The notes under the pieces are model-generated. The model was given only the letters and a program-made list of their open reading frames with translations. It did not search any database and was not told the DNA's origin. This document shows positions 1-63,954 of a stretch of DNA of 64,000 bases, piece by piece; position 1 is the stretch's first letter; each line of letters opens with the position of its first letter. The stretch comes from Lepidodermella squamata (Eukaryota > Animalia > Gastrotricha). The translations under genes were made by a program, and so were the position numbers. The DNA lies in NCBI GenBank assembly GCA_047495785.1, contig JBLDXI010000004.1, forward strand, positions 248,001-312,000. The letters are read 5' to 3'.

Positions 1-1282
1 TTCCTCGTGAAAAACTACCCTAAGGCGTTTCTAGGGGGGGTTTCGACATGAAAAGAAGCGGTTTTGCCGATTTCTTTGAGATTTTTATTTTTATAATCCA
101 ATTAATTGATCAATTCAATAGCCGGAAACCAAATTTTGATTGCGCGATTTCTTCACAACCATTCACCCTGTTTTGATGAAAATTGGGGCTCTAGGATAAC
201 TTTTTACGCTGAACAAGATGATGCGAACCGTTAATTGATAGAGACGATTGGATGAGCGCAAATCGATAATCGATAATCGATAATCAATCAGTTTCCTGTT
301 ATGCTTGCAATTTTCAAATAGCGAATAGATTTTTCTTAACAAAGCATCCTCCTCATCGAACAAAATGCTTAGAAAAAAGAATGCAGTAGAAGAAAAATAG
401 AAATAGGAATGAACGTAAGCAGATTCGCCTCTACACTGTCTTGTCAGAACATCTATCATAGCCGATTAATCGGGCGATTAATTGATGCCAGGAAAGACGA
501 TTTTTGGACGAGCGCCATGATTTAAATTCGATTCGACTTAATCGTGATTTAATCGCGATTAGCCAAAATCGGAGCGCATCACTACTTACCACCAAATTTA
601 GTCGAAATTAAATAAATCAGGCTGAAATCGAACAAATGTTTCGCCCTGTTAGGTTGACTTGTTAGGTTGACCGCCACAAAAAGCCAATATTACTATTTCA
701 TAACTCGGATACAAATTAAAAGTAATTTATTCAATTTATTTAACAGGCACCAAAGTCTGAGATTATTTTGCCTGAAGCGGAAAGGGCTGGTATTATTCTG
801 CTTTTATGTTGTTGTGATCATTCGGATTTTTGAGAACAAACTTTAAATTTAAATTTTTTAAATATTTTTTGCGAAAAATAAAACTTGAATGTTGACAAAG
901 GTCGTAGTGGCGAGTACGCCCATGATTTCGGACACTTAGGTACAATGGCGAATTTGCGCAAATTAAAGCGGCAGTCAACATTTGAGTAAATACCTTTCCG
1001 TTGAAACTAAATAACAACAATGCAGCAAATGATGGTCTAAATTAACGAGGGCCACCATCATATAAAAACGAAGAATTATAAAATTCGGAAAAATAGGATC
1101 TGACCCTGAAATGGACGCCAGGTCGGAAGTATACTCTTTGACACGCGACCATCTGTTGCACAGTTGTTTATCAGGGCTGGGCGCCAAAAAATGAAACCCT
1201 AGTTTTTCACTCGTTACGATTTTTTTCAAATTCACACTGATATTTTTGGATTTTTTCAGCATTATCTTTGCGTTTAAATGAT

Positions 1283-1372
1283 TGTTTATCTCATGGCAAT
1301 AACAACAGCGCGTGCTGTTTTCACATATTTTCAAATGCGTCAGATGGAAGTGAACGCGTGCTTTTGAAAACA
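1283..1372 (+). promoter_or_regulatory. Conserved upstream block of the lectin-family genes
   Basis: TGTTTATCTCATG..CGCGTG..TGTTTTCAC..AATGCGTCA..AACGCGTGCTTTTG recurs about 100-210 nt upstream of the ATG of copies 1, 2 (5805-5888) and 3 (19858-19940). Confidence 0.55.
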
Positions 1373-1491
1373 CTTGAACGCCTGGGCTTGAAATTGACAC
1401 AACGAAATTCACATTTCATACAGTTGTATTTTTCAAATTCAAATAAATTATGGTAAATTGATATATGCTATCATTTTTATTGATAATTAGA

Positions 1492-3084
1492 ATGACTTTA
1501 CCTCAATGCCTTGCTACTGGCGCTTCTGATGCTGGCTTCAATCGATGTTGCTTCAGGCAAGCAGTTGAACTGGGTTCGGTGCTTCTCGCAGCAAAGCAAC
1601 AGATTCACCGCCTGCGTGCCAGCTGCGGATGGATGTGATCCAGTCAAAGAATTTCAGGTTTACCTTTTTCTTTGATATGACATTGCCAGCTTGATATTTT
1701 CACCAACAGTGGGGCCAAATTTTCCGAACCACCGGCGTCTGCAATACTGGGGTCCGTTCATTCATTTTCTCGCATTGTATTGCACTAAGTTTGTTTTGAT
1801 TTCTCTACAGAATGGCCGAATGTGCTACAAATACGCGGCTCTTACTACGTTTTGCGTTCCTGGAAATGTCGGTTGCAACAATCCTGGTGATATGAATGTA
1901 TGCCATAATCCTAATTCATCCTAATGGAAATTTCAACAAATGTCTTAAATTCATGATGGTCAAAGAATTTTAATATAAATAATTTCTAGACGTTTTGGTT
2001 GACGATCAGACGCAGGCTTTGAGCTTGAAGTACAACCTTAACGAATGTGAGAAACTACGACCTGTTTTTGATGTGAGAAATTCGAAAAACGCCTCGGCGG
2101 ATTGTACCTGCTGTTTTTCCGTTTCAGAAATTGACATTCCTGCGGTGCACTTCTGGCGGCACCACGAAAACCTGTGTTCCGGACCCGTACACTTGCCCTG
2201 AAAACTGGGCAAGTTTCATTTTTTGTATTTTTTTCGTTTTTTTTTAAATTCGTTAAATTCCAAAATTCTAATTGATGAATATTTTAAATTCGAAATTTCA
2301 AGTTTTTTTAACTTTGAAATTTCATCTCTGAGAACGATAACTAATCAAAATATTTTTATAAAAAATGTATTTCTATACTCATCAGATTGTAATTTATTCT
2401 GTTCTATAATTTCTGTGCTTTACCCACGTAGGTCACTGAGCCAACGCTGTTCCCGAATTTAGCGTCTTGCATTAACAATTCCGTAATATCGACATCTGTG
2501 AGTAACTTTGGGAAATAGTTTTCTTCCTCTGTAATTTCAAATCACCTGCGAAATTTCTGTTTCTGTAGTCCAGCTTTTACCGCTGCGTCGACAACAGTGA
2601 TGGGGCCGTTCATTGCGTACCCCAGTCGACTGGCTGCAATGCGGCAACTCAGCTTCGAATTCCGGCTAATACCACCTACTTGGACGAGAACAGCTGCAAA
2701 AATGTGACAAAGAAATTCATTGCCTTGAACACGTTAGACACGTGGAAAATGGCCCCTTCGAGCTGCATCGAAGCCAATGCGACGCTGGCAACGATTAGGT
2801 CAGACGAGGAGCTTGCAAGAGCTAAACAAACGTTGAGTGCGGTCAATGCTCGTGATACGTGGATCGCTCTCAGCAAACAAAGCGGCGTGATCAAATGGGG
2901 CGATGGTTCCGATTTCAATTATGTCCAATCGCAATGGTTTCCTTCCGATAATGCTAACGATCGCATCTTCATATTAAAGTTTCTTACTACGCAAGATAGT
3001 GCTGTCACAGTCGACGGCTATTACTATACTGGAATCACTTCGGATTCTTTAACGGACCATACCTTATGCGAAACATTTGCGTAA
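1492..3084 (+). pseudogene. Cys-module/CTLD secreted protein, copy 1 (4 modules + CTLD), frameshifted
   Basis: Exons 1492-1657, 1710-1751, 1811-1897, 1990-2072, 2128-2208, 2432-2497, 2569-3084, collinear with copy 2. A 2-nt deletion just after the ATG and a 1-nt deletion in exon 4 (TGGTT-GAC, 83 vs 84 nt) break the frame. Confidence 0.8.
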
Positions 3085-3820
3085 CATGATTGAGCCTGTA
3101 ATCTGAGCTCGCAAGAAGAGATGGATGACGTAATTCGCCAGATTTGATGTGAGAAGATTTTATGAAGTAAAACAGCATTAGTGAAGACGGGGCTTTTTGA
3201 GCCAGGATGTCATGATATCCACGCTGATTCATGGCTCGAAATTTTGCCAGCATTCACATTCACCCTTATTTTCCTTTTTTCAGGTGCGAAAGTTGCGAAA
3301 ATACTGAAAGTCACGGAAATGCCTCCATTTTACTTTTCCGAAATCACGGCGTGAGGGATCAGCCTTGTTGAACATGACTCGGGCTTGGATCCCGTTGCTG
3401 TGCGGATTTTTCACTTTCACCCATCATCACACGTCTGCCTTGATTATTTATGTTTTGAAGTTTTCCCTGCCAGAAAATCGATTTAAATTTATCAGGATTA
3501 TTAGTCAAGTTATATATATATATATCGAGCCCTAGTTGTGGGAGTCGATTGGATTTCATTCTCTCATTCTCTCATTCTCTTCATTGGGACAGGAATAGCA
3601 AGAAACAGGCTACCACTCATTCACCGTTGTTCATTATACTTCGATACGAGATCTGACGTGGAAAAATTGGCGTGATGAGCCGATGCGGTGGTTCGACTGT
3701 GCGGCGGCCTATAGCCTGAGAATATCATAGCAGGAATTTTAAACGGCGCCCTTTCACATTCAAACCCTCACCCTCTCAAATCGTCGTATAGCATTTTCAA
3801 CAATCATGGCATAGCATCAA

Positions 3821-51045: not shown

Positions 51046-54000
51046 TTAGCTTCCAGAAGAAAAGATTTCACACATAACCGTGTTAACGTTCATATCACAC
51101 GGCAGCGATACCAATTGCCATAGACCTGACGGGATGCCGTTATCAGTATCGATTCAACCCAACGCAATCGTAATTTGGTTGACAGGCTTCGGATGGCCGC
51201 TCACCCAAACGACATTAGAAGGCGAGTAAGCTGAACCGTCTGCCCACTTGTAGACGCCAGATCGCCGGTCGAGGCCCACCCAGCAGGCCTCTTCCGTGAT
51301 GAACTGAGAAACGCCGAATTCATTGTTTGTTGTGAACGACACAATGCGCAATCCAGCGGCTTCACATCTCGCTGCGGCAACTGTTATGTTTCTAACTGCG
51401 GAATCCAGCCGGATAAATACGAAGTACTTTTGAGCATTGAGGCAATTTTCTCTGTTGTCGTAGGTTATACGCGGAGGGTAAGGCGATTCGCCTTGGGCAC
51501 ATCCCGTCTTTTTCCCTCGGCAAGTCACGGCGCCATTCGAGGCTAAGCAGCGCAGGTGAGGAAGCTGTGAGAAAACAAGGCAAAAAATAAGAGCGCTTCT
51601 GTCTCTACAGCTGAATAATGCGCAATAAGAGCCGCCAAAGTGTACGAAGTAGAAACTTCAAGCTTGGAGATACACACAGTACCCCGTACCCCCTCCCTTT
51701 TTTCAAAAAGTTGATTTTCAATTTCGAATTTGTTCCATCAGTGCGATAAATATTAATATAATATCCGAAATAACTCACTAGTTCGATTGCACAGGAGTAG
51801 AAGTCATCGTAATTTCGGACAAAAGCTTGCCCGTCTCCCCCAACAGTTAATTGAGCTGCCTTGATTTCAAAGAAAATCATTCAGTTAGAGCATCTAGAAC
51901 ATCTAAAAAGAATCATCTTACGGCCTCCGGGCAGATTCTGCCTTTCGGCACGCAGAATAGCAATATCTCTCTCGAATCATATTCATATCCGCATTTATAG
52001 TATTGGCCCTGAGAATAAGATAAATAAATTGACACGGCTTCTCATAGGTATGTAGCAAACTTGGGTGGCGTTGATGCATGCCGCCATGCTATCGCTCAGG
52101 CTGGTCGTGGGTGATCCGACTGGTCCGAGCTGTTGTAAAACAGATATAAATCACAGCATTGAACTCAAGCGAATGACTCACATCGTACATCGCATCGGAT
52201 GAACATTGCTCCCGGCATCTTGCAGCTTCCGTGGGGCTCACGAAGCACATTTGAAGGGGCTATGAATTATCAGAATGGGAGCGCTATGATGACTTGTCGC
52301 TTGGTTTATTACTCACTCCTTTTTCACAATCGGACTTCGTCGGGTAAAGCGTCGCTCCAGTGGTCTAAATCGAGCATTTATTATTTCCATATTTGCAATA
52401 GGAATATCTTGCTCACCTCGCCTGAATTGCACTGAGTTGATGCCTTGACGCAGCCTGTAAACGAAGGCTTCGACCAGTCGAAACAGCGGCGATGCGGATA
52501 CATTTCAGGCGGAGCTGAAAAATTCATGAAAATTTTACGAAATTAAAAAAAATGATTAGCCCAAGCTTTACATTGTTGGATAGAGCAAAAATAAATTAAG
52601 ATCATAGTATTTTTCTCGGAATTTTTTGGCACAAAATGAAAACTTTTACCGTCTAGAAAGATCGGAAAAGTTACAATGGGCGGATAGGGAGATGAGTTAA
52701 TAAAATTGAGGATCGCGCGCTCACTTTTCAACGTTATGGTGTGAATTTATTTATTTTCGGAAGATCGCTAGTTTCCGATCTGTATAGAGTTGTCTATGGC
52801 TAAGCCTAACCACCATCTTACTCTTACTATGAATCTCTCGATTTTCAAGGTAAGGGGCGAGCTGAAAGAGCCGCATTTACCAGCTAAACAAATTTTTTTT
52901 AATTTTGCGAAAAGGGTCGCCCTAATGATTTGTGGGCTTAAACGCTCCAATCGTGTTACAAGCATTTAGAGCCAAAAGCTATCAAGACCTGAGAGCTGGA
53001 CCGATTCGGACAACTGGTATTGATATGTTTGGAAAATTCAAACCACCATAATTTTGATGTTGTTGGGAAAGATAACGCGTTTAATAACAACATCTGAAGG
53101 TACCTGGCCATCAGTCTTCAAGGTCGTTAACGTATGTCCAATTTTCAAGAAGAAGTCTAAATCGAACAAGGCCAACTATCGACCCGTGGGTATGGGTGAA
53201 CACGTAGGCAAAGTCCTGGAGAGAATACTTGCTGAACTAGTCGTAAAAACCGCGATAGCTAACGGAGTAATACCTCCAGAACAAGCCGCCTTCCTGTCAG
53301 GCTGCGGCACAACCGATACCCAACTGTCCGTGGTAATCGACATCATCTCCGCGATAAACGACAGAAAAGACTTCATCCTCCGCCAAACTGATGTTAGTGG
53401 GGCGTTCGACAGAGTGGACAGATCTCTTCTTCTCGACATTCTTTGGAAATCGGGCATACAGGGACAAGTTCACGCTATGATCCGATCATTCCTGACAGAC
53501 AGATACTTCCGTGTCTTGGTGGCCGGGGCGTCGTCGAGCCTTCGATCTGAAGATGCAGGTATCTGCCAAGGTAGTGCACTGGGGCCATCCCTCTGGCTCG
53601 TCTGGTATAGCGGAATCAGCCGATCGGTGTCCAAAATCGTCGACCAGCCCAATTACCACCCACCTGAGCCGTACACCTTCGCCGATGACTTTAACCTGGG
53701 AAGCACGAACCAATCAGATGTCGACATTGGAGAAGAGAAGGCTATGCAGTGGGCGAGAGCTCACAGAGTCTCGATGGACCCGAAGAAGAGGATAGATACA
53801 AAGTTCTCTTATCCACGTTTCAACTGTGGAAGAAGAAGACTGAATGAAGATAGCTCGCTTGAAAGCACCAACCCCTCGAAAGCGGAAACGGCCACTACAA
53901 CGCTACTGGGCCTAGTACTCGACACCGGTCTATCAATGGAGGAATGCATGACCAAGAAGATCGGTCAGGCCAACAGGGCAATCACGCAGCTCCTAAGACT

Positions 54001-55865
54001 GAGACCTTACTTATCGACACGCCAGCTCGAAAATGCTTACAAGACCTACGTTCTACCATACCTCGAATTCGCTATGGTACCATATACATTCGCGGCGTCG
54101 GCTAGCACCTTGGAGAAACTCGATGCAGTTCAAAACAGATTTGTTAAGATGACGGAAGCCAAATTGACACCGCTGGGCCATCGCAGATTCGTCGGGGTCA
54201 TGACGTATCTCTACAAAACTATGGTAGCAGGTCGGGGGACGAACCAAGTCCGCTCGAAATTTATAAAAATCCCGAAGCCGAATACAAGAACGAGGGCAGC
54301 GAGCGAGAAACACCACCATCAACTACAGCTTGCAAAATCGTCGAAGAACAGGGTCGACACGGCACCCTTTCGAAGGATGCAAGAGATCGTCAATCAATGG
54401 AACGACCTACCACGCGATACCTTTCCTGACACCGTCAACATCACAATATTTAAAGAAAAGATGAACGTCCTAGGGCGTCGGCTATAAGCCTACTAATGAT
54501 AACTGTGTGCGCCTGAATTTTTTCGTAAATAAAAAAAAAAAAAAAAACATCTAATATTAATAAAATAATTTCACAGCTCAGCTGGACAAACCAGTTAAAC
54601 ATTCGTTTAGAGTGCTGAATGTCATGCCAGCTACATTTCCATTTGAACACGACGCGTTACTCGAGGCCGGTTTACATTCGACAAGAGAAAACGTTGTAGA
54701 ATCGACGCATAAAATACGAGGTTGCTGGCAGAAATGATGGCTGGTTAGTTAGAGTAGATAAATTGTGAAGTCAACAAACCAGGCTGTCTAAGCAGTCTGC
54801 GTAGTTTGCGCCAAAGTCAGTCGAGGCTTTGAAGGTTGAAACCTAAAACACGAAAAAAATCAATTCAATCTAGAATGGATAATATCGAAAAAAATTGTTT
54901 GCAATTTTATCAAAATTTTAGCAGCACGCGATCGAAAAAAATTCATAAAAAAATCTACGGCAAATTCTATTACAAGGCTAATAAGAGAGTTATCGGAAAT
55001 TGAATACTCAAAAAATACCAACCAAAGTGAGAGGCGACGGGCAAGAATTTCGGCAAACGGGACCATTGGAAGAGGAACACAGCGCAGCTGGCTACGAATT
55101 TAAAAAAATCAGACATCTCGTTGGAAGTAATCTTTGAGTTTGCTCACGCCAGCAACACAGTAGGCCTTGTTCATGAATGAACCACTGTTATATTCCTATA
55201 AAATACAACAAAATCGAAATGCTGGGGGATTGAAGGGAACGAGGAACACACCTGTGTCAGGTTGGTGTCAGTGCAAGGCGTAGATCGACAGCCAACAAAA
55301 GCTCGATTGCTTTTGGCAAAGCACCGGTAATTAGTCACGAAATCGGCAGTGTTGCGAACGGCTAGAAAATGTCAATTAAATGTCAATACGTTCCAGATGC
55401 TATAGAGAACTAACCTCGGGTAGAATCCAAGCAAGCTTGCATCGTCGCAAAAGCATTGATCAAGGTCTGAAATTAGTGAAGCAGTTTTAGTAGCAATTTA
55501 ACGACTGGGCATGAATATTCGAGAATTTCAAGCAGGAATTAAAGAATTTTAAAATTCGACTAGCTCGATATCACAGAAAATTTCAAGAAAAAGAAACATT
55601 TGACATCAATAACAAAAAAAAACTTCGTATTCAAATCGGAAATTAAAAAAATTGAAATTTTTGAAAAATTTCAGAATTGATCAAAAATAATTCCGAAATT
55701 CTTCTATCATAAGTGGTTAAAAATTAAGAAAATTAAAAATTAAGAACGAAAAACTTACGCCGCCAGTTGGGCATGAGCCGCCTGGAATGCAGATTTGCTG
55801 GCCGTCGCTGCTAGTGAAATTGGCTCCAAATTGAGAAAAAAGATGACAGCCAGTAGAAACTTCAT
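51046..55865 (-). pseudogene. Cys-module/CTLD gene, copy 7 (~8 modules + CTLD), frameshifted, LINE in intron
   Basis: Exons 55865-55759, 55466-55415, 55361-55252, 55195-55148, 55091-55023, 54842-54780, 54724-54592, 52514-52417, 52364-52317, 52259-52182, 52129-52061, 52008-51922, 51859-51779, 51564-51046. Probable 1-nt loss in exon 1 and two deletions in the CTLD relative to copy 8. Confidence 0.8.
53096..54547 (+). mobile_element. 5'-truncated non-LTR retrotransposon (RT domain) with poly(A) tail
   Basis: NYRPVG, DVSGAFDRV, GICQGSALGP, FADD; poly(A) 54531-54547; TSD AACATCT at 53089-53095 and 54546-54552. Confidence 0.9.
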
Positions 55866-56807
55866 ATTATCGTATTTTAACTAGAACGAGTGCTTTTAGA
55901 AATAAATATTTTCCGTTGAAGAATTGTATTAAAATCTGGCCACGTTTATAGAGTCGATCGCGTGTCAAGTTCGCACATCAAAAAAACGTGTTTGCTTTTA
56001 AAATTTGTAAACATTGTGTTTGAGGTTTTTTGGCGCGAAAAAACGAAGATTTCCATTGGCTGATTCAAATAAAACCGCGATTTTCAAATTTCGAATTTTT
56101 TATTAAAAATAATCGTATTGGCTCGGCACGTGCGAAGACTCGGAAAAAAATATCTCAGTCATTCATGCAAAAAATATCAAATAAAAAATGCCTTTTTAGA
56201 GCAGAGAGATCAGTGAAAAAATTTGCAAGCAACTGGTAAGTATATGGTAAGTTAATCCAACAATATAGATTCACGTTATAAAACACATGTTTCAAAATAT
56301 CAACATCACGGAGGTATTTGCAATTATAACTGAAAGACAAGACGTAGTTTTTCCAGAATAATCCATAGTTACATGTAGATAGATAGAGGCAGCGATCAAA
56401 AGTTAAATACATGAACATCGCCTTCAGAAGTTTCAAGATCATAATTTCTCGAGAGATTTTATTGATATTTCACACAGCTATTATAAAATTCTCCATAAGC
56501 CAACTAAATGGTCGATTATATCCGTGGGGTGATAGATGATAAGTCCGTAGATTCGTTCAAGACTTGCGGCGAGATGCAAAAGAACGACAAGCGGCATTAA
56601 TTAATAATGGCAACGCTCATTTATTTATATTTAATTGATAACGAGAAAAGAGAGCAAAAAATTATAATATTTCCAATACATGAATCAACTGTTAATTTTA
56701 AGATAATAATAAGTTTGGCTTACTGTGAGAGATGTCTTCACGCATTCGCATATAATTTATAGCCAAAGTTATTTATCAGACGAAAATAAATCAGGCGAAA
56801 AAATTAA

Positions 56808-57692
56808 TCAATTTACGTATGTAAGAATCAGTTCTTTCAATTTTTTCGCTGCGCCAGTAAGCGGCCGTGTTCCAAACACGTCGGTCCAATTCTTGTGAGC
56901 TTCGATTATTATGTTGGCCAGCTCGGGCTCGGATGTATTTTTCGCGAGAAATCGATCGTAGTGTTCGTCAATGAGATCAGCGAAGGCTTCGAGTTCGCAC
57001 TTTAAATATTCATTAATGTAAATATTATTTTATGAAATATGTTAAATGTTAACGCCAACCTTCAAGTAGAGATGCCGACGTGGGCCAGTCTGGCGAGCAG
57101 GAGCAGCATTAATAAGCATAGCCATTTTCTCGCGAATCGGGATGCGACGCGGGGTATCGATCAGTACGCTTGTCCGTCGAAAGTTCCAGCCTGGCAGCAA
57201 AGTTTTATCGGGCGCCACAGTGGCATCAGGATTCACGTCGGGATCAGGACTCGCCGACCGCGAGTTGTTGGCTGAAGAATGAACAGATGAGCGAGCTGAA
57301 GAGTGTGCTGAAGAATTAACCGACGAACGCGCAGAGGAACGAGATGAACGATCGGACCGCGCACTTGCTAGGCTGCTGCGCCGCGATGAAGGCCTCGAGT
57401 TCAACGTTAGCCTTGCGACTACCTCGTTTAGGTCATTTTCTTCGGGTTCGGCGATGGTCAGTTTGAAATGAGGAGGCTCGTCAGGACTGAGCCGAAACGC
57501 CCGGGCCAACGCCTGTTCGTCCACGACCGAAACCCAGAAGCTTCCGTCAAAGTACTTAATCGCTAGTGGAAACGACCCTGTGAGTTTCCATTTCCATTGT
57601 CGAAGAATTTCTGCTTGCAAACTTGCCACGGTACGTTCTTCGATGGAGAAGACCCGAACGTCGTCTTTCCAGGACATCCTTATTTCCGACAT
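56808..57692 (-). CDS. PB1-domain-like protein with Ser/Arg-rich linker
   Basis: N-terminus IRMSWKDDVRVFSI..LAIKYFDGSFWVSVVDEQALARAF fits the PB1 pattern. Probable exons 57692-57060 and 56999-~56808; 3' end uncertain. Confidence 0.65.
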
Positions 57693-58283
57693 TTAAGAGT
57701 TAATATATCTAAAATATAAAAAATATGAAATAATGCAATAAATTAAAATAATTAGTTCCAAGATGGTTCAGCGATAAATGTATCTAAATTGAATGCGTAA
57801 AACACCGCGGGATGGCTTGGTATCGCGCCTAGAATAGGAATCTTAATGCATCCACAGAGGGTGAAAAAACGTCATCTCACGCTGGGAAAAATTTGGCGTA
57901 GAACGGATGGTCGTCAATTTTGAAAATAGTCGAGCATTTTTCAAAAGTGCCGATCAGATTAGTAATATCTTGAAAAGGGATCATAATTCGTTTGCCAAGT
58001 GAGCCGAATCTAAATAACTATTATCAAGCAAGCAAGATGAATTACGTAAAGCAAAATTACTTTTTAAAAACTGCCGCAGCGGTAGCTTTCAAACAAGGTA
58101 GGAAAATAGTACCCTTTCGAGGCAAACAATTTTTGTGACGACGATTTCCGCGCCTTGTCGACAGGTAGTGCGCTAGTAAAACGTGTAGATCGTCTTTCAT
58201 TTCAAGTTCAGTAAAAATTCTAGTTACTGACGTTCATATTTATAAAAATAGTGTTAAATTATCGAAATTCCAAGTATTGTATC

Positions 58284-60463
58284 ATGGGCGACATCCCAGC
58301 GGTAGGAGTATTGCTGGGAAACGATTTAGCTGGGAGACCCGCGATTATTAGAATAGCCCCAGTCAATAAAACTATTGCTAAACGAAAAGCTATCCGCAAG
58401 CCTTATCGAGAGCTGTCGAGGCAGCAAAAAGTTATTCGCGTTCAACAAGCGTTGGAGGAGCATATGGATAACTTCAAGAATTCTTCTGCATTCCGGCATT
58501 ATGTGGGGAATGAAAAAATAGAGAGATTGGAAATGAAAGCGAAAGTCGTAAATCTGCCCGAGGTCTCCTCGCGTAGACCAGATGGATGTGTGAAAGCATC
58601 GATAGAACGAGCAGAAACTTGCGAAAAGTAAAACTTTCATTAAAAGAAAAAGACGTTAATGTGTCAATTGACCATATTCTTTTCAATAGAGTAATGGAGC
58701 AACAAGCATCGAAGCTTGTACCTACGCGTTCGGCCTATCCGATTGCCAAGCTTTTAGGCCGAGCGAGAATATCTGGTCCTGGATTAATAAGAGCTCGCAG
58801 AGTCATGTCCGGTTATTTGGAAATCGATGGCATAGAAGGTTTGCTGATTGGTTAGTCAATAATTTTAAATATGCTTCATTCGCTTTTAAGACGAAAACGA
58901 GAAGGAAAGAGGCGTAAGAATCAAACTGGATCAGTTTTTGGAAAAATGGATAGCATCTGGTCACTTGAAATCTCGTATGCTGAACGAAGTACGCTTGCAA
59001 ATCGATGGGACACCTCGACGAACCTCCGTTGGGGATTGTCTGGTACAAGCGACGTTATGCTTTGTGACAAAGAAAAAGAAAACTGGTTTGAACGAAGAAT
59101 TTCAGCTCTTAATCTACGAAGGCAAGGAGTCTTACGAATCAGTCAGGAAATACTTGCAACCGGTGGTTGACGAATTGGTGAAATGGGCCACGGAAGGAGT
59201 GCGGGACAAAAATAATATTCGATACCGCATCAAAATTATTTTGATATGCGATTACCCTATGCTTGTTTACATTCAAGCGTGTGGGCATCACGGCTCGCAC
59301 CATGCATGCATTTTTTGTACCAAGGATTTTCGACATGAAGAAGCTGTTGGTGAGGAAAGGAAATTTGATGAAATAGAAGACCAGTGGCACCAGATGAACG
59401 AACGCGAACGCGAGGAAGCCGGCTGGCACAGATTATTTCTACCCATGTTCCTATTACCCAAAGAGGTATTTCAAGTTGCACCTTGCGTCTTGCATCTTGA
59501 ATGTTGCATCACGAATTCTGGGTTGGAAGCGGTAAGAAATGCTGCGGTTTTAGTAATGATTGAATACTTCCTTAACAGATTTTAACAAAATTGAAAGCTG
59601 AAAATCTCACTTCTGCATATGACAACATCAGTAGAATAATTCAATCAAGTTCTAAAAAACTGACATTGCAAGCTTCAACTACTTGCCAGCGAAAAGTGAA
59701 TATTACACGAGCAAATCACACCGCGACAACTAACGTAAGCTAACTTGATTTCTATTTAACGACATGATATAATGAAAAACAGTCACTCAAATGGCTGGCG
59801 ATGACAGGCTCGCTGTTTCAATATCTCGGACCTAATTGGCATCTCGAGTTTGTGAAAGGAAGATACGGTCGAGATATGGCTTTCTACAAGCAATGGCTAC
59901 TGGATAACCACGGCGTGAGGGTCAGGTCTCATTGGACGCTGGAGCAAATTCAGCTGAAAGCTATTGAAAGAGGCCTTGAGCGCGATGTAAGCAATAAGAA
60001 AAAATGCAGCAATTAAACTAAATATTTTCTTAACCAGAACATCGAAAAAATGCAGCAATATATACTGCAGTGCGACGATTTCTTGCAAACATCAAAAAGA
60101 ATTTTCGAAAGAATTGATTGCATGGATCTTGGCGGTGATCCCGAGGAAGACTTCGAGCGATTCGAAGAAGCATTCAAGGGAATTGTTGGAAGGCTGACTA
60201 CTTATGCGCACAGTAAGGACACTTGAGCTAAAACCTTAAAATAACTACAATTGTCGCTATTTCAAGTTACAGCGCGACACGTTCTACCGTTGCTAAGAAT
60301 GGGCATTAACCTGAGATTACTTTCAGCCGAGTCAATCGAAATCAGGCAAAAAATTATCAAGAAAATGCTAAGCATGACTTGCGCAGCTTTGCCTTCATCT
60401 ATTCCGCGGCAACTAATGAAAGTGTTCATGATAAGGTTGTCGCAGTACTGGCGTGCTATTTAA
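58284..60463 (+). CDS. RAG1-core/Transib-like DDE transposase (621 aa, 7 exons)
   Basis: Exons 58284-58627, 58690-58838, 58891-59531, 59579-59734, 59783-59986, 60038-60212, 60267-60463 total 1866 nt with no internal stop. Motifs RKPYRELSRQQK, QIDGT, GKESYE, D-x18-CIFC, PCVLH, YAH-x4-H-x19-E. Confidence 0.82.
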
Positions 60464-61097
60464 TCTCAAAACCGAAGATTCTAAACCAATGTGATCATTA
60501 ACAATTTGTGATTTGTGATGAGCTGTAAGCTGTGATGAAATGGTTCACGGGAAAGTGAACGAAGAGATTAAGAATAAAATGTGACCGATTTACAACTACT
60601 TGGCGACAACTATACGTCCGTTGGAAAAGTTACACATATTTGTGGTAATGAAAGACGACGAATAGACAAGTGACAATGACAAGAAAGTTGCTAGTAAGCC
60701 AAAATCTGGTATCAGCAGCAGAAAACACAGCGGGATTCTGAATAGACCGCCGGCGGGATATTTTGACCGAAAATAGTTGATAATCAACATTATTTATTTA
60801 TTTTGGATTTAAAACTTAAAGACATTTTTTGTGATTTACATATTATTTGAATTTGCCGCTGATTTTCTTTCGGCCAATCAGAAGAATGGAAAAATTTCTA
60901 CTTACAACCTAAAACATAATGAAGATTGTCGGTGGTAAATCACGTAAGTGTAACGTGAACTCTGCCGTGATGTCGTAAGTCGAAGGCGAGAGCACGTGCG
61001 CTCGTTGTCCCATCAAAAACAATTCTGGCATCATCAAAAAATGTTTCATTTCCAAAATCTTATTTTTCTGAAAAATAAATAATTCTTCGTGGCTAAT

Positions 61098-61440
61098 ATA
61101 AAACTATACGTATTTATTTTATTCTCCGCTCTGCTAACTCTGGCTCTTAGCCAAACCTTTTCTGTGTTTAACAATAAATTTCGGCGTTGCCGTCGCGAAT
61201 CAAGGGGCTGCATTGTAACCCAATTCCCGGTAACAACAAAGCTGTAATTCATCATAAAAAATTAGAAATTTAATTTGTTTAGACGGGGCCGAGTCTGAAC
61301 ACATCTGAACAGTGCATTCGAGAGGTGAGTGATCATTCAAATCATTTCGGTGATTTATTTACCAGCAAGCCTCGCTTTGCTGTAAACCCAAAACGCTCAA
61401 TGCACTTTGCCGGAATGCACTGGCACTAAAAAATTTTTAA
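61098..61440 (+). pseudogene. Remnant of a divergent Cys-module gene
   Basis: ATA in place of ATG, signal-peptide-like KLYVFILFSALLTLALSQ, RRC..GC exon (61098-61229), 42-nt one-Cys exon (61283-61324), decayed third exon from 61366. Confidence 0.55.
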
Positions 61441-61594
61441 TGTGGAGTTTATTTTATTTTATTTTATTTTATTAGTACTTCAGTTGTGCCTGTTTAAAAC
61501 GGCTCAAGAAAACTTTGCTCATCATCCGTCCACTTTACTCACAAACTCGTCTAGATCATTCATATTAGCTTCACCGTAAATGATTCACCAACTT

Positions 61595-63954
61595 TCAGTT
61601 TCCGAAATCAAAGCTTTCACACATAACCGGGAAAACGTTCATATCACACGGCAGCGATACCAAGGCAAATGGACCTGACGGGATGCCGTTATCATCGTAG
61701 TATCGATTCATCCCAGCACAATCGTAATTTGTGTTGACGGGCTTCGGATGGCCGCTCACCCAATCGACAGTAGAAGGCGAGTAAGCTGAACCGTCTGACC
61801 ACTTGTAGACGCCTGATCGCCGGTCGAGGCCCACCCAGCAGGCCTCTTGGGGTGTGTTCTGACCATCGACGAATTCTGCCCTTGTTGTGAACGAGGCCAG
61901 GCGAAATCCAGAGGCTGCACATCTCGCTGCGGCAACTGTTATGTTTCTAACTGTGGAATCCAGCCGGTTAATAACGAAGTACTTGCGAGCTCTGAGGCAT
62001 TTGGCTTTGTTGTCGTAGGTTATACGCGGAGGGAAAGGCGATTCGCCTTGGGCACATCCCACCTTTTTACCCCGGCAAGTCACGGCGCCATCCGAGGCGG
62101 TGCAACGCAGATGAGGAAGCTGCGGATAAAAAAAAACAAAAATTGATCGCTTCTTTTCATTCCGCTGATATAAATCACTTTTTTCAAAATGAAGCAGTAC
62201 AGCAAAATGAAGTAGGATCCCAGAAACTAACTGGGGCTTATATTAAAACCCGAATTGGTGTAGCAAAGCTACCCATTTCCCTTGGTACTTCATAAGTGAA
62301 ACGAAACGACAGGCAATCATTATTCCAAATTCGATTGTCAATTTTTGAATTTTGAATTCCATCAGTGCGATACACATTCAAAAATATCGAAAAATAACTC
62401 ACTATGTCAGCAGCACACGTGTAGAAGTCGTCGTAACTTTGGATAAAAGCTTTGCCGTCTTCCCCGAAAGAAAATGGACTTCTCTTGATTTCAAAGAAAC
62501 GCATTCAGTTAGGAGCAAACGTATGACGAGAATCCTCTTACGCCTTCTGGGCAGTAACTGTTTTTCGGCACGCAGAGTAGCAAGTTGCCGGCGTCATTTT
62601 CATCATCAACGCATTGATGGTATCGGCCCTAAGAAAAAAGGTTAAACATGACACGACAGCTTTTTCACTCATAATACAAACTTGAGTGGCGTTGAGGCAC
62701 AGCATCAAGCTATCGCTCAGGCTGGTCGTGCGTGTTCCGAACGGTTGGAGCTGTTTGGGAAACAGAAACGATTATTCGCATTGAAATTTGATGAATGACT
62801 CACGTCGTATTGGCCATCGCCGGTTGGACATTCCTCCCGGCATGATCCACCCTCAATAGTGTCCAAGCACATTCGAATAGGCTATGAATTATCAACGTAA
62901 AAGAAGTCTTGAAACTCGATTTGGTACTCACTCCTTTTCCGCAATCGTCTTTTGTCGGGTAAATCGTCGCCCCAGCGGTCTGAATCGAATTTTCATTATG
63001 GCAATCGGTAATAAAGATTGTGTACTAACCTCGCCTGAATTGCACTGCGTTGGTGCTTTCACGCAGCCTGTAAATGAAGGCTTGGACCAGTCGAAACACC
63101 GGATATGCGGATACATTTCGGGCGGGGCTAGAAATAATACATTTCGATATTTTAAAAAGTGAATTTAAATTTATTTAATTTTTTTCCGCTATCAATTCGA
63201 AATTCCGCTGGAATCATTGAGGAAATGCCGGATGACCAACGGCGTTCCGATAACTTCCGATAATAATTTCCAATGGAAAAATGACAATAGGTGAAGTGCC
63301 AACAGTGTGCAAAGTAGGATCCGGGTGCTGACGCGTTTTCCAATTTTTTCTAGGACCCAGCCAAAGGGTCCCCTGTGGTTTTGTCAACCTTCCTCTGATT
63401 GCAGTCCCCGTACTTCCCCGTACTTCGCAGTCTAGCCTTGAACCTGAACCCTAACCAAACCCAAACGCCGACCCTAAATCCGAACCCTTACTACTAACCT
63501 CAACCTCCAACCCGCGTTCCCAACGTTTTCAGCAATTATTTTGGGCAAGAAACTAGTTATGGTAATTTCGCTGCTAAAGACTGGGTTGAACATGGGTAAC
63601 GTTGTTCAAATCCAATAACTAAAAAATATCGGGGAATACAGGCCTTCAGGGGCCGAAGGCGGACCTATCCTCGCCAAGCTCAGCAAAGTTGGACATACCG
63701 TTTAAGCAATCGTTGAGAGTGCTGAATGTCGCTCCAGCTACATTTCCATTCGAACACGACGCGTTACTCGAAGCCGGTTTACATTCGACAAGAGAAAAAG
63801 TTGTGGAATCGACGCATAAAACGTGAGGTTGCTGATAGAAACGATGATTCAACTCGCAAGAATAGTAAAATCGTGGAGTTAATTAACAAACCAGGCTTGT
63901 TAAACAGTCGGCGTAGTTTCCGCCAAAATCAGTCGAAGCTCTGAAGGTTGAAAC
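61595..63954 (-). CDS. Cys-module/CTLD protein, copy 8 (5' part lies beyond the window)
   Basis: Exons 63954-63892, 63831-63699, 63127-63030, 62979-62932, 62881-62804, 62750-62682, 62628-62542, 62483-62403, 62119-61595; in frame, internal exon sizes identical to copy 7. Confidence 0.85.

Follow-up and report, generated by a model that had tools for sequence, protein, structure and literature searches.

We analyzed a 64,000-nucleotide (nt) stretch of Lepidodermella squamata contig JBLDXI010000004.1, called the window below, in which the original prediction had recognized an intron-containing gene at 58284-60463 and read it as a divergent recombinase of the RAG/Transib lineage, possibly still active or domesticated. 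Our results indicate that this gene probably encodes the transposase of a 4.9-kb cut-and-paste transposon that carries two genes, looks autonomous, and belongs to the CMCT clade. The family is a rare new one of a known kind and is no special relative of the antibody-gene recombinase. The CMCT clade includes EnSpm/CACTA, Mirage, Chapaev, Transib, Plavaka, and ESTA as well as Lanisha, and membership is defined by shared motifs, CA..TG ends, and target-site duplications of 2-5 bp (PMC12730594).

The boundaries of the element were mapped by aligning contigs of run X1, the sole public run with this DNA, to positions 55800-61700. One X1 contig joined 56009 directly to 60922, skipping 4,912 bp, with two letters that fit either side of the joint, and X1 contigs broke exactly at 56011/56012 and at 60921. 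Direct reading of the window gave the same arrangement: the left flank ended with AA, followed by CATTGTGTTTGAGGTT, whereas on the right AACCTAAAACATAATG was followed by AA and the flank. The ends are imperfect inverted repeats of 16 nt (CATTGTG... / ...CATAATG), and the end motif was detected at only these two places in the 64-kb window, with 0.1 such matches expected by chance. The 4.9-kb element is thus missing from another haplotype or individual and present in the copy carried by the window, a presence/absence polymorphism that argues for recent mobility of the family. The word depth of the X1 contigs was 251-446 within the element and 68-86 in the flanks, that is, 3-6 times deeper inside, and the element family is probably multi-copy. 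The ends were missed both by a generic inverted-repeat scan, which saw no long inverted repeats, and by a strict-mismatch ungapped scan. Because the empty-site contig sets the boundaries, two other pairs of candidate ends were dropped: an inverted match at 58190/60647, perfect over 12 nt, and an 18-mer rich in A+T at 56086/61254.

The gene model was built by reading 57600-61200, where seven exons on the + strand with strong donors and acceptors join into one open reading frame (ORF) of 621 amino acids (aa). This confirmed the six GT-AG introns of 47-62 nt and the stop-free 621-aa ORF proposed in the original prediction. The introns measure 62, 52, 47, 48, 51, and 54 nt; an alternative donor at 58851 would reduce the second to 40 nt and yield a 625-aa protein, and the sequence appears to favor neither choice. 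The G+C content was 0.29 in the introns versus 0.44 in the exons. Each intron carries a frame shift or an in-frame stop, and read-through would end within 1-17 codons. Relatives encoded on metagenome contigs (23-33% identical) have single ORFs that span the positions of introns 2, 3, 4, and 6, and because these positions are bridged, the four introns gain support beyond chance. The relatives also retain a TxYxH-x3/4-H...LSAE[NS]IEI block, the same block that intron 6 interrupts in the window.

The encoded enzyme is predicted to be a 621-aa DDE transposase with an RNase H-type core and putative catalytic residues D203, D285, and E581 or E578, and its C304-x2-C307 and H556-x4-H561 motifs would form a module of the same kind as the zinc-binding module of RAG1. 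In exon 3, D203 is encoded at 59004-59006, E244 at 59127-59129, D285 at 59250-59252, C304 and C307 at 59307-59318, and H366 at 59493-59495. The two Asp residues are 82 aa apart, C304 (59307) and C307 (59316) lie 19 and 22 residues past D285, and E581 (60338) lies 20 residues past H561. All of the residues quoted in the original prediction (the Asp codons at 59004 and 59250, C-x2-C at 19 and 22 residues, H-x4-H, and the Glu at 60338 at 20 residues) were found as described, as were the 82-aa distance and the lack of a RING N-terminus: exons 1 and 2 gave no Pfam match to a RING, N-terminal zinc, or nonamer-binding domain. The N-terminal 164 residues contain two Cys and no zinc finger, and no conserved N-terminal domain common to the window protein and its relatives, even the near ones, was found. 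The proposed resemblance to the nonamer-binding domain therefore drew no support either from the Pfam searches or from comparison of the N-terminus with relatives. The features of the element are listed in Table 1.

Table 1. Features of the transposon, its ends, and its two genes (positions in the window).
Feature	Position	Strand	Basis or content
Left target-site duplication copy (AA), 2 bp	56010-56011		Empty-site contig and direct reading
Whole transposon, 4,910 bp	56012-60921	+	Empty-site contig, contig breaks, depth step
Left terminal inverted repeat, CATTGTGTTTGAGGTT	56012-56027	+	14/16 match to right end
Partner gene, ~274 aa	56808-57692	-	Exon 1 57692-57060; 60-nt GT-AG intron 57059-57000; exon 2 56999-56808
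Spacer between divergent start codons, 591 bp	57693-58283		Geometry only
Transposase exon 1	58284-58627	+	aa 1-114; basic, lineage-specific N-terminus
Transposase exon 2	58690-58838 (or -58850)	+	End depends on donor choice
Transposase exon 3	58891-59531	+	RNase H core; D203, E244, D285, C304/C307, H366
Transposase exon 4	59579-59734	+	Covered by contiguous L007 ORF alignment, window residues 192-447
Transposase exon 5	59783-59986	+	Weak similarity to L004
Transposase exon 6	60038-60212	+	Last residue H556 (60209-60211)
Transposase exon 7	60267-60463	+	H561 (60278-60280), E578 and E581 (60329-60340), stop
Right terminal inverted repeat, CATTATGTTTTAGGTT (outside-in)	60906-60921	-	14/16 match to left end
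Right target-site duplication copy (AA), 2 bp	60922-60923		Empty-site contig and direct reading

The AlphaFold (AF2) model of exon 3 showed the RNase H topology that the original prediction had anticipated (beta1-beta2-beta3-alpha1-beta4-alpha2), with both Asp residues at canonical places, D203 on beta1 and D285 just past beta4. When this model was compared all-against-representatives, the solved structure ranked first was RAG1 (4wwx_E; Z 7.8 over 195 residues, model residues 1-213 on RAG1 533-808), followed by further RAG1 entries, BbRAGL (Z 7.2), and HzTransib (Z 6.5), and then by retroviral integrases with only ~80 residues aligned. Foldseek against PDB yielded nothing beyond weak matches to RNase H and RAG entries, with a TM score of 0.32 to RAG1. 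The nearest predicted structures were Transposase_21, DUF1280, and unnamed transposase clusters (TM score 0.59-0.66), and no RAG1 cluster was present among them. Comparison of ESM features placed DUF1280-type clusters first (0.97), together with unnamed clusters, RAG1 RNase H/ZnC2 fragment clusters (0.96), and Transposase_21 clusters, all within 0.94-0.97. One neighboring atlas cluster had DUF1258 in 10% of its members.

As a control, the catalytic core of an animal EnSpm-like protein (P0095:147-544, a sea cucumber record) was modeled from a 64-sequence alignment, giving a predicted local distance difference test (pLDDT) score of 95.7. This core matched RAG1 with Z 20.5 over 370 of its 398 residues, and its other solved matches were BbRAGL (Z 19.3), the P element transposase (Z 15.3), and HzTransib (Z 14.2). 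Its residues D40, D118, C137, C140, H333, and E357 are invariant, with H337 nearly so, and the spacings are 19 and 22 residues from D to Cys, 20 from His to Glu, and 78 aa from D to D. Because the CMC control reaches Z 20.5, the match of the exon 3 fold to RAG1 is clade-wide; the RAG1 spacings noted in the original prediction likewise occur in plain CMC transposases and are therefore not diagnostic of the RAG1/Transib lineage. Accordingly, the DDE RNase H core, the rank of RAG1, RAGL, and Transib as the closest solved structures, and the exact spacings all stood, but the lineage specificity attached to them did not, since an ordinary EnSpm-like CMC transposase shares both fold and spacings. 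Since ordinary CACTA-type transposases have them too, neither the spacings nor the fold of RAG1 can serve to flag RAG ancestors in genome scans.

Pfam and homology searches were carried out exon by exon, and the spliced protein as a whole was used only in the motif and alignment analyses. Among the Pfam families, Transposase_21 stands for CACTA, DUF1258 represents Mirage, and Chapaev is covered by DUF1280 (PMC3985635). Exon 3 (213 aa, containing both Asp residues and CxxC) matched Transposase_21 (CACTA tnp2) with an E value of 7.9e-5 and 22.4 bits (gathering cut-off 28.6 bits), and DUF1280 (cut-off 25 bits) scored 13.2 bits over 23 residues of the window protein. DUF1258 had no match on the window protein, and the RAG1 Pfam family had none in any exon at E values up to 10. 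A PDB sequence search (phmmer, 16-sequence profile, E values up to 10) recovered no RAG1, RAGL, or Transib chain. The HMMER check proposed with the original prediction thus reached CMC-type transposases and left RAG1 and Transib unmatched.

Relatives of the window protein are very few. HMMER, run exhaustively against 1.84 billion representative proteins, gave 16 matches in all, six of which were near relatives, metagenome fragments with at most 32-44% identity. The other matches were distant; five were full-length transposases of 620-736 aa, and weak Transposase_21, DUF1280, or DUF4218 signals were found in three of these five. In a word-indexed protein search, the near-family profile returned only three fragments and the DUF1280-like protein P0009 one relative, and a scan of metagenome contigs found none. 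Over the HMMER and near-family searches together, near relatives numbered about seven, with identity to any representative protein put at no more than 32%.

Profile comparison connected this small family to the CMC side. When the near family of the window protein was aligned by hhalign with 64 animal EnSpm-like cores, drawn from a family of >2,300 members of which many are DUF4218-tagged, the match had a probability of 97.7% and an E value of 1.7e-12 over 178 columns, and both Asp residues were in register, as were the G-x-E/K block, CxxC, and the xxLH motif. The C-terminal H..H..SAE.IE block also aligned in register with the CMC motif H-x3-H...SAFPFE, and the H..H..E block was conserved in the relatives L004 and L005. 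The H-x4-H spacing itself was unstable in the family, being H-x3-H in L005 and ambiguous in L004, and the His-to-Glu distance was 17-21 in relatives. Matched two-sequence profiles were then compared with the window near family, giving E values of 3e-12 for a Glomeromycota pair (P0007/P0016), 1e-9 for a DUF1280-like pair (P0009/P0140), and 4e-10 to 5e-7 for four EnSpm-like pairs. These values show no clear preference, and EnSpm-like and DUF1280 (Chapaev)-like proteins appear about equally distant from the family. L004, the metagenome contig with the closest long relative, also encodes (1233-3167, - strand) a separate 644-aa EnSpm-like CMC transposase with an H-x3-H...SAFNAE motif, and the organism behind L004 is also rich in the CMCT clade.

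The window element resembles the members of the CMCT clade in its motif set (D203, D285, C304-x2-C307, H556-x4-H561, and E578/E581), its 5'-CA...TG-3' termini, its AA/AA duplication, which falls within 2-5 bp, its RAG1-type fold, and its profile-level homology to CMC-type members. It differs in that it could be assigned to no named lineage and has a lineage-specific N-terminus and a PB1-like partner. With animal EnSpm-like and CACTA-related elements it shares the D-to-Cys distances of 19 and 22, the His-to-Glu distance of 20, a similar D-D distance (78 versus 82 in the window protein), and the 2-bp duplication; however, EnSpm-like proteins have H-x3-H where the window protein has H-x4-H, and the latter lacks their signature blocks WPIL, DAPARA, DYMHL, WKATEFR, and SAFPFEN. 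In contrast to CACTA elements, the ends of this transposon start with CAT rather than CAC or CCC, and Transposase_21 remained below its cut-off. Plant CACTA elements make 3-bp duplications, whereas the 2-bp duplication found here fits the animal type. Mirage elements make 2-bp duplications according to Repbase, so the transposon would fit in this respect. Animal CACTA-related elements that make 2-bp duplications have been described as "TRC" elements (PMC4298943).

Likeness to Chapaev is seen in the weak DUF1280 signal of both the window protein and P0009, in the DUF1280-containing clusters that came first by ESM features (0.97) and were among the best by shape (TM score 0.66), and in the gap pattern around the second Asp and the xPDxLH motif, which resemble those of P0009 and P0007. 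The Chapa/RING N-terminal architecture is found in Chapaev and RAG1 (PMC4411706), whereas the window protein has no Chapa-type zinc finger, RING, or Cys-rich N-terminus; moreover, its DUF1280 match was below the cut-off, and the DUF1280-like pair was no closer to the window family than the EnSpm-like pairs. By these sequence comparisons, the family appears unplaced within the CMCT clade.

The second gene of the element lies upstream of the transposase gene, head-to-head with it and within the element boundaries. It encodes a protein with a PB1-like N-terminus, a Ser/Arg-rich linker, and an orphan 63-aa C-terminal exon; the ESM features of its first 95 residues scored 0.92 to PB1 clusters. The partner gene had no Pfam match, and no relative of it was present on the contigs bearing transposase relatives. 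The 591-bp spacer between the two start codons may serve as a shared bidirectional promoter. We infer a mechanism in which the enzyme would bind the 16-nt inverted ends and excise the element, and insertion with a 2-bp stagger would produce the AA/AA duplication. If excision resembles that of the RAG, Transib, and hAT systems, it probably involves nicking and a hairpin formed on the flanks. The divergently transcribed PB1-like protein, which would be expressed from the spacer, is probably an accessory or regulatory subunit. Of the points raised by the element, the partner gene and any dependence of the transposase on it hold the greatest interest.

A TTCCATT...CTGATT(GG) block resembling a CCAAT box is present in both subterminal regions (56048-56066 and 60871-60890), ~35-55 nt from the ends; these blocks may be binding sites for the transposase or a host factor.

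Several points weigh against the assignment to an autonomous CMCT-clade transposon. Every Pfam match fell below its gathering score, the exon 3 model was moderately confident (pLDDT 76.7, 16-sequence alignment), and the joint ZnC2/ZnH2 site of the full-length protein is predicted from motifs. The sole empty-site contig has a short side of 28 nt, its other (right) flank is ~90% identical to the window, and contig depth is uncalibrated as copy number. Finally, the splicing of the six introns is a prediction, as is the activity of this intact-looking, apparently active copy, both being read from the sequence. If the assignment is correct, the element represents a compact, apparently intact, and recently mobile member of a very rare family, and would be tractable for a transposition assay.

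It is unlikely that the family instead forms a deep separate branch between the CMC side and Transib/RAG1. If it did, the RAG1-like H-x4-H motif, the heptamer ends (CA..TG and nearly palindromic), and an obligatory partner other than RAG2 would inform on the origin of RAG-type recombinases and of their two-subunit organization, and experiments on this question could use the element as a small system of two genes that appears active.

An inactive relic, in which this copy or its family no longer moves and some predicted introns are unreal, is also an unlikely explanation. Exon 1 had no homologue support among the relatives examined, most of exon 5 had none either, the introns are predictions from genomic sequence, and 2 of the 16 end positions are mismatched; the contigs also suggest deleted or rearranged derivatives. 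A second, weaker X1 joint, for example, connects 56080 to 59647 and may represent an internally deleted derivative lacking the partner gene along with two thirds of the transposase gene. However, all catalytic and zinc-type residues are present, each intron is canonical at its ends and required for the frame, relatives have single ORFs that run across junctions 2, 3, 4, and 6, and the presence/absence polymorphism speaks for a family that moved recently. The coding differences of the X1 contigs from the window (two synonymous and two non-synonymous) are too few to inform on selection. X1 also contains a divergent piece of ~90 nt over the CD...CxxC block (59232-59321) with unrelated sequence on either side, suggesting that other parts of the genome contain related families, and an X1 contig has a 13-nt insertion, ATTTTGACATAGG, at window position 56345 in the left non-coding arm of the element.

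We consider it improbable that the family truly belongs to the Transib/RAG1 lineage, or is its closest outgroup, rather than being part of the CMC side. RAG1, RAG1-like, and Transib structures (PDB 4wwx, 6dbi, 6b40, and 6pqn) are the best solved matches and share with the window protein the RNase H core and the order Asp, Asp, CxxC, HxxxxH, Glu; the ESM score of the RAG1 RNase H/ZnC2 clusters is level with that of the transposase clusters, and H-x4-H is as in RAG1. In contrast, no RAG1 Pfam match and no RAG1, RAGL, or Transib chain was recovered by sequence or profile at E values up to 10, the TM score to RAG1 was 0.32 versus 0.6-0.66 for CMC-type models, and no RAG1 cluster was among the nearest atlas shapes, whereas the CMC control itself matched RAG1 strongly. 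The D-D distance of 82 aa is near the 78 of the CMC control and far from the 108 of RAG1, and the relatives show H-x3-H or an ambiguous motif with His-to-Glu distances of 17 to 21.

The consensus heptamer of recombination signal sequences (RSS) and Transib ends is CACAATG, in which the third base, C, is critical; in Transib ends it precedes a spacer and an A-rich, nonamer-like block. The end heptamers of the element, CATTGTG and CATTATG, agree with this consensus at 5 of 7 positions, but have T rather than C at the third position. No nonamer-like block common to both ends of the element was found at a matching distance, and no 12/23 structure of the RSS type emerged at the ends. Kapitonov and Jurka in 2005, and Repbase, are said to give 5 bp as the Transib duplication, whereas that of the window element is 2 bp. 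The only partner within the element is PB1-like and not RAG2-like (kelch-repeat), and neither a RING nor an N-terminal zinc domain was found. The weak DUF1280 (Chapaev) affinity could also be taken in favor of a RAG1/Transib relationship, since some authors unite Chapaev with Transib/RAG1 (PMC4411706, PMC3985635).

Descent of a single-copy host gene from such a transposase by domestication, a possibility also raised in the original prediction, is very improbable, for although the intact ORF, the host-like short introns, the single copy in the 64-kb window, and the lack of long inverted repeats in the generic scan would suit it, it is contradicted by the flanking inverted ends with their 2-bp duplication, by the allele lacking the whole 4.9 kb in another haplotype or individual, and by X1 contigs with breaks at the ends and, inside, a depth several times higher that indicates multiple copies.

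With respect to the surroundings of the transposon, no Rfam families were detected in 55000-62000. A 477-aa ORF at 53054-54487 (+ strand), ~1.5 kb upstream of the element, resembles the reverse transcriptase of non-LTR (long terminal repeat) retrotransposons. Just to the right of the insertion, a C-type-lectin-like ORF is located at 61595-62083 (- strand), and the element lies in the adjoining intergenic DNA.

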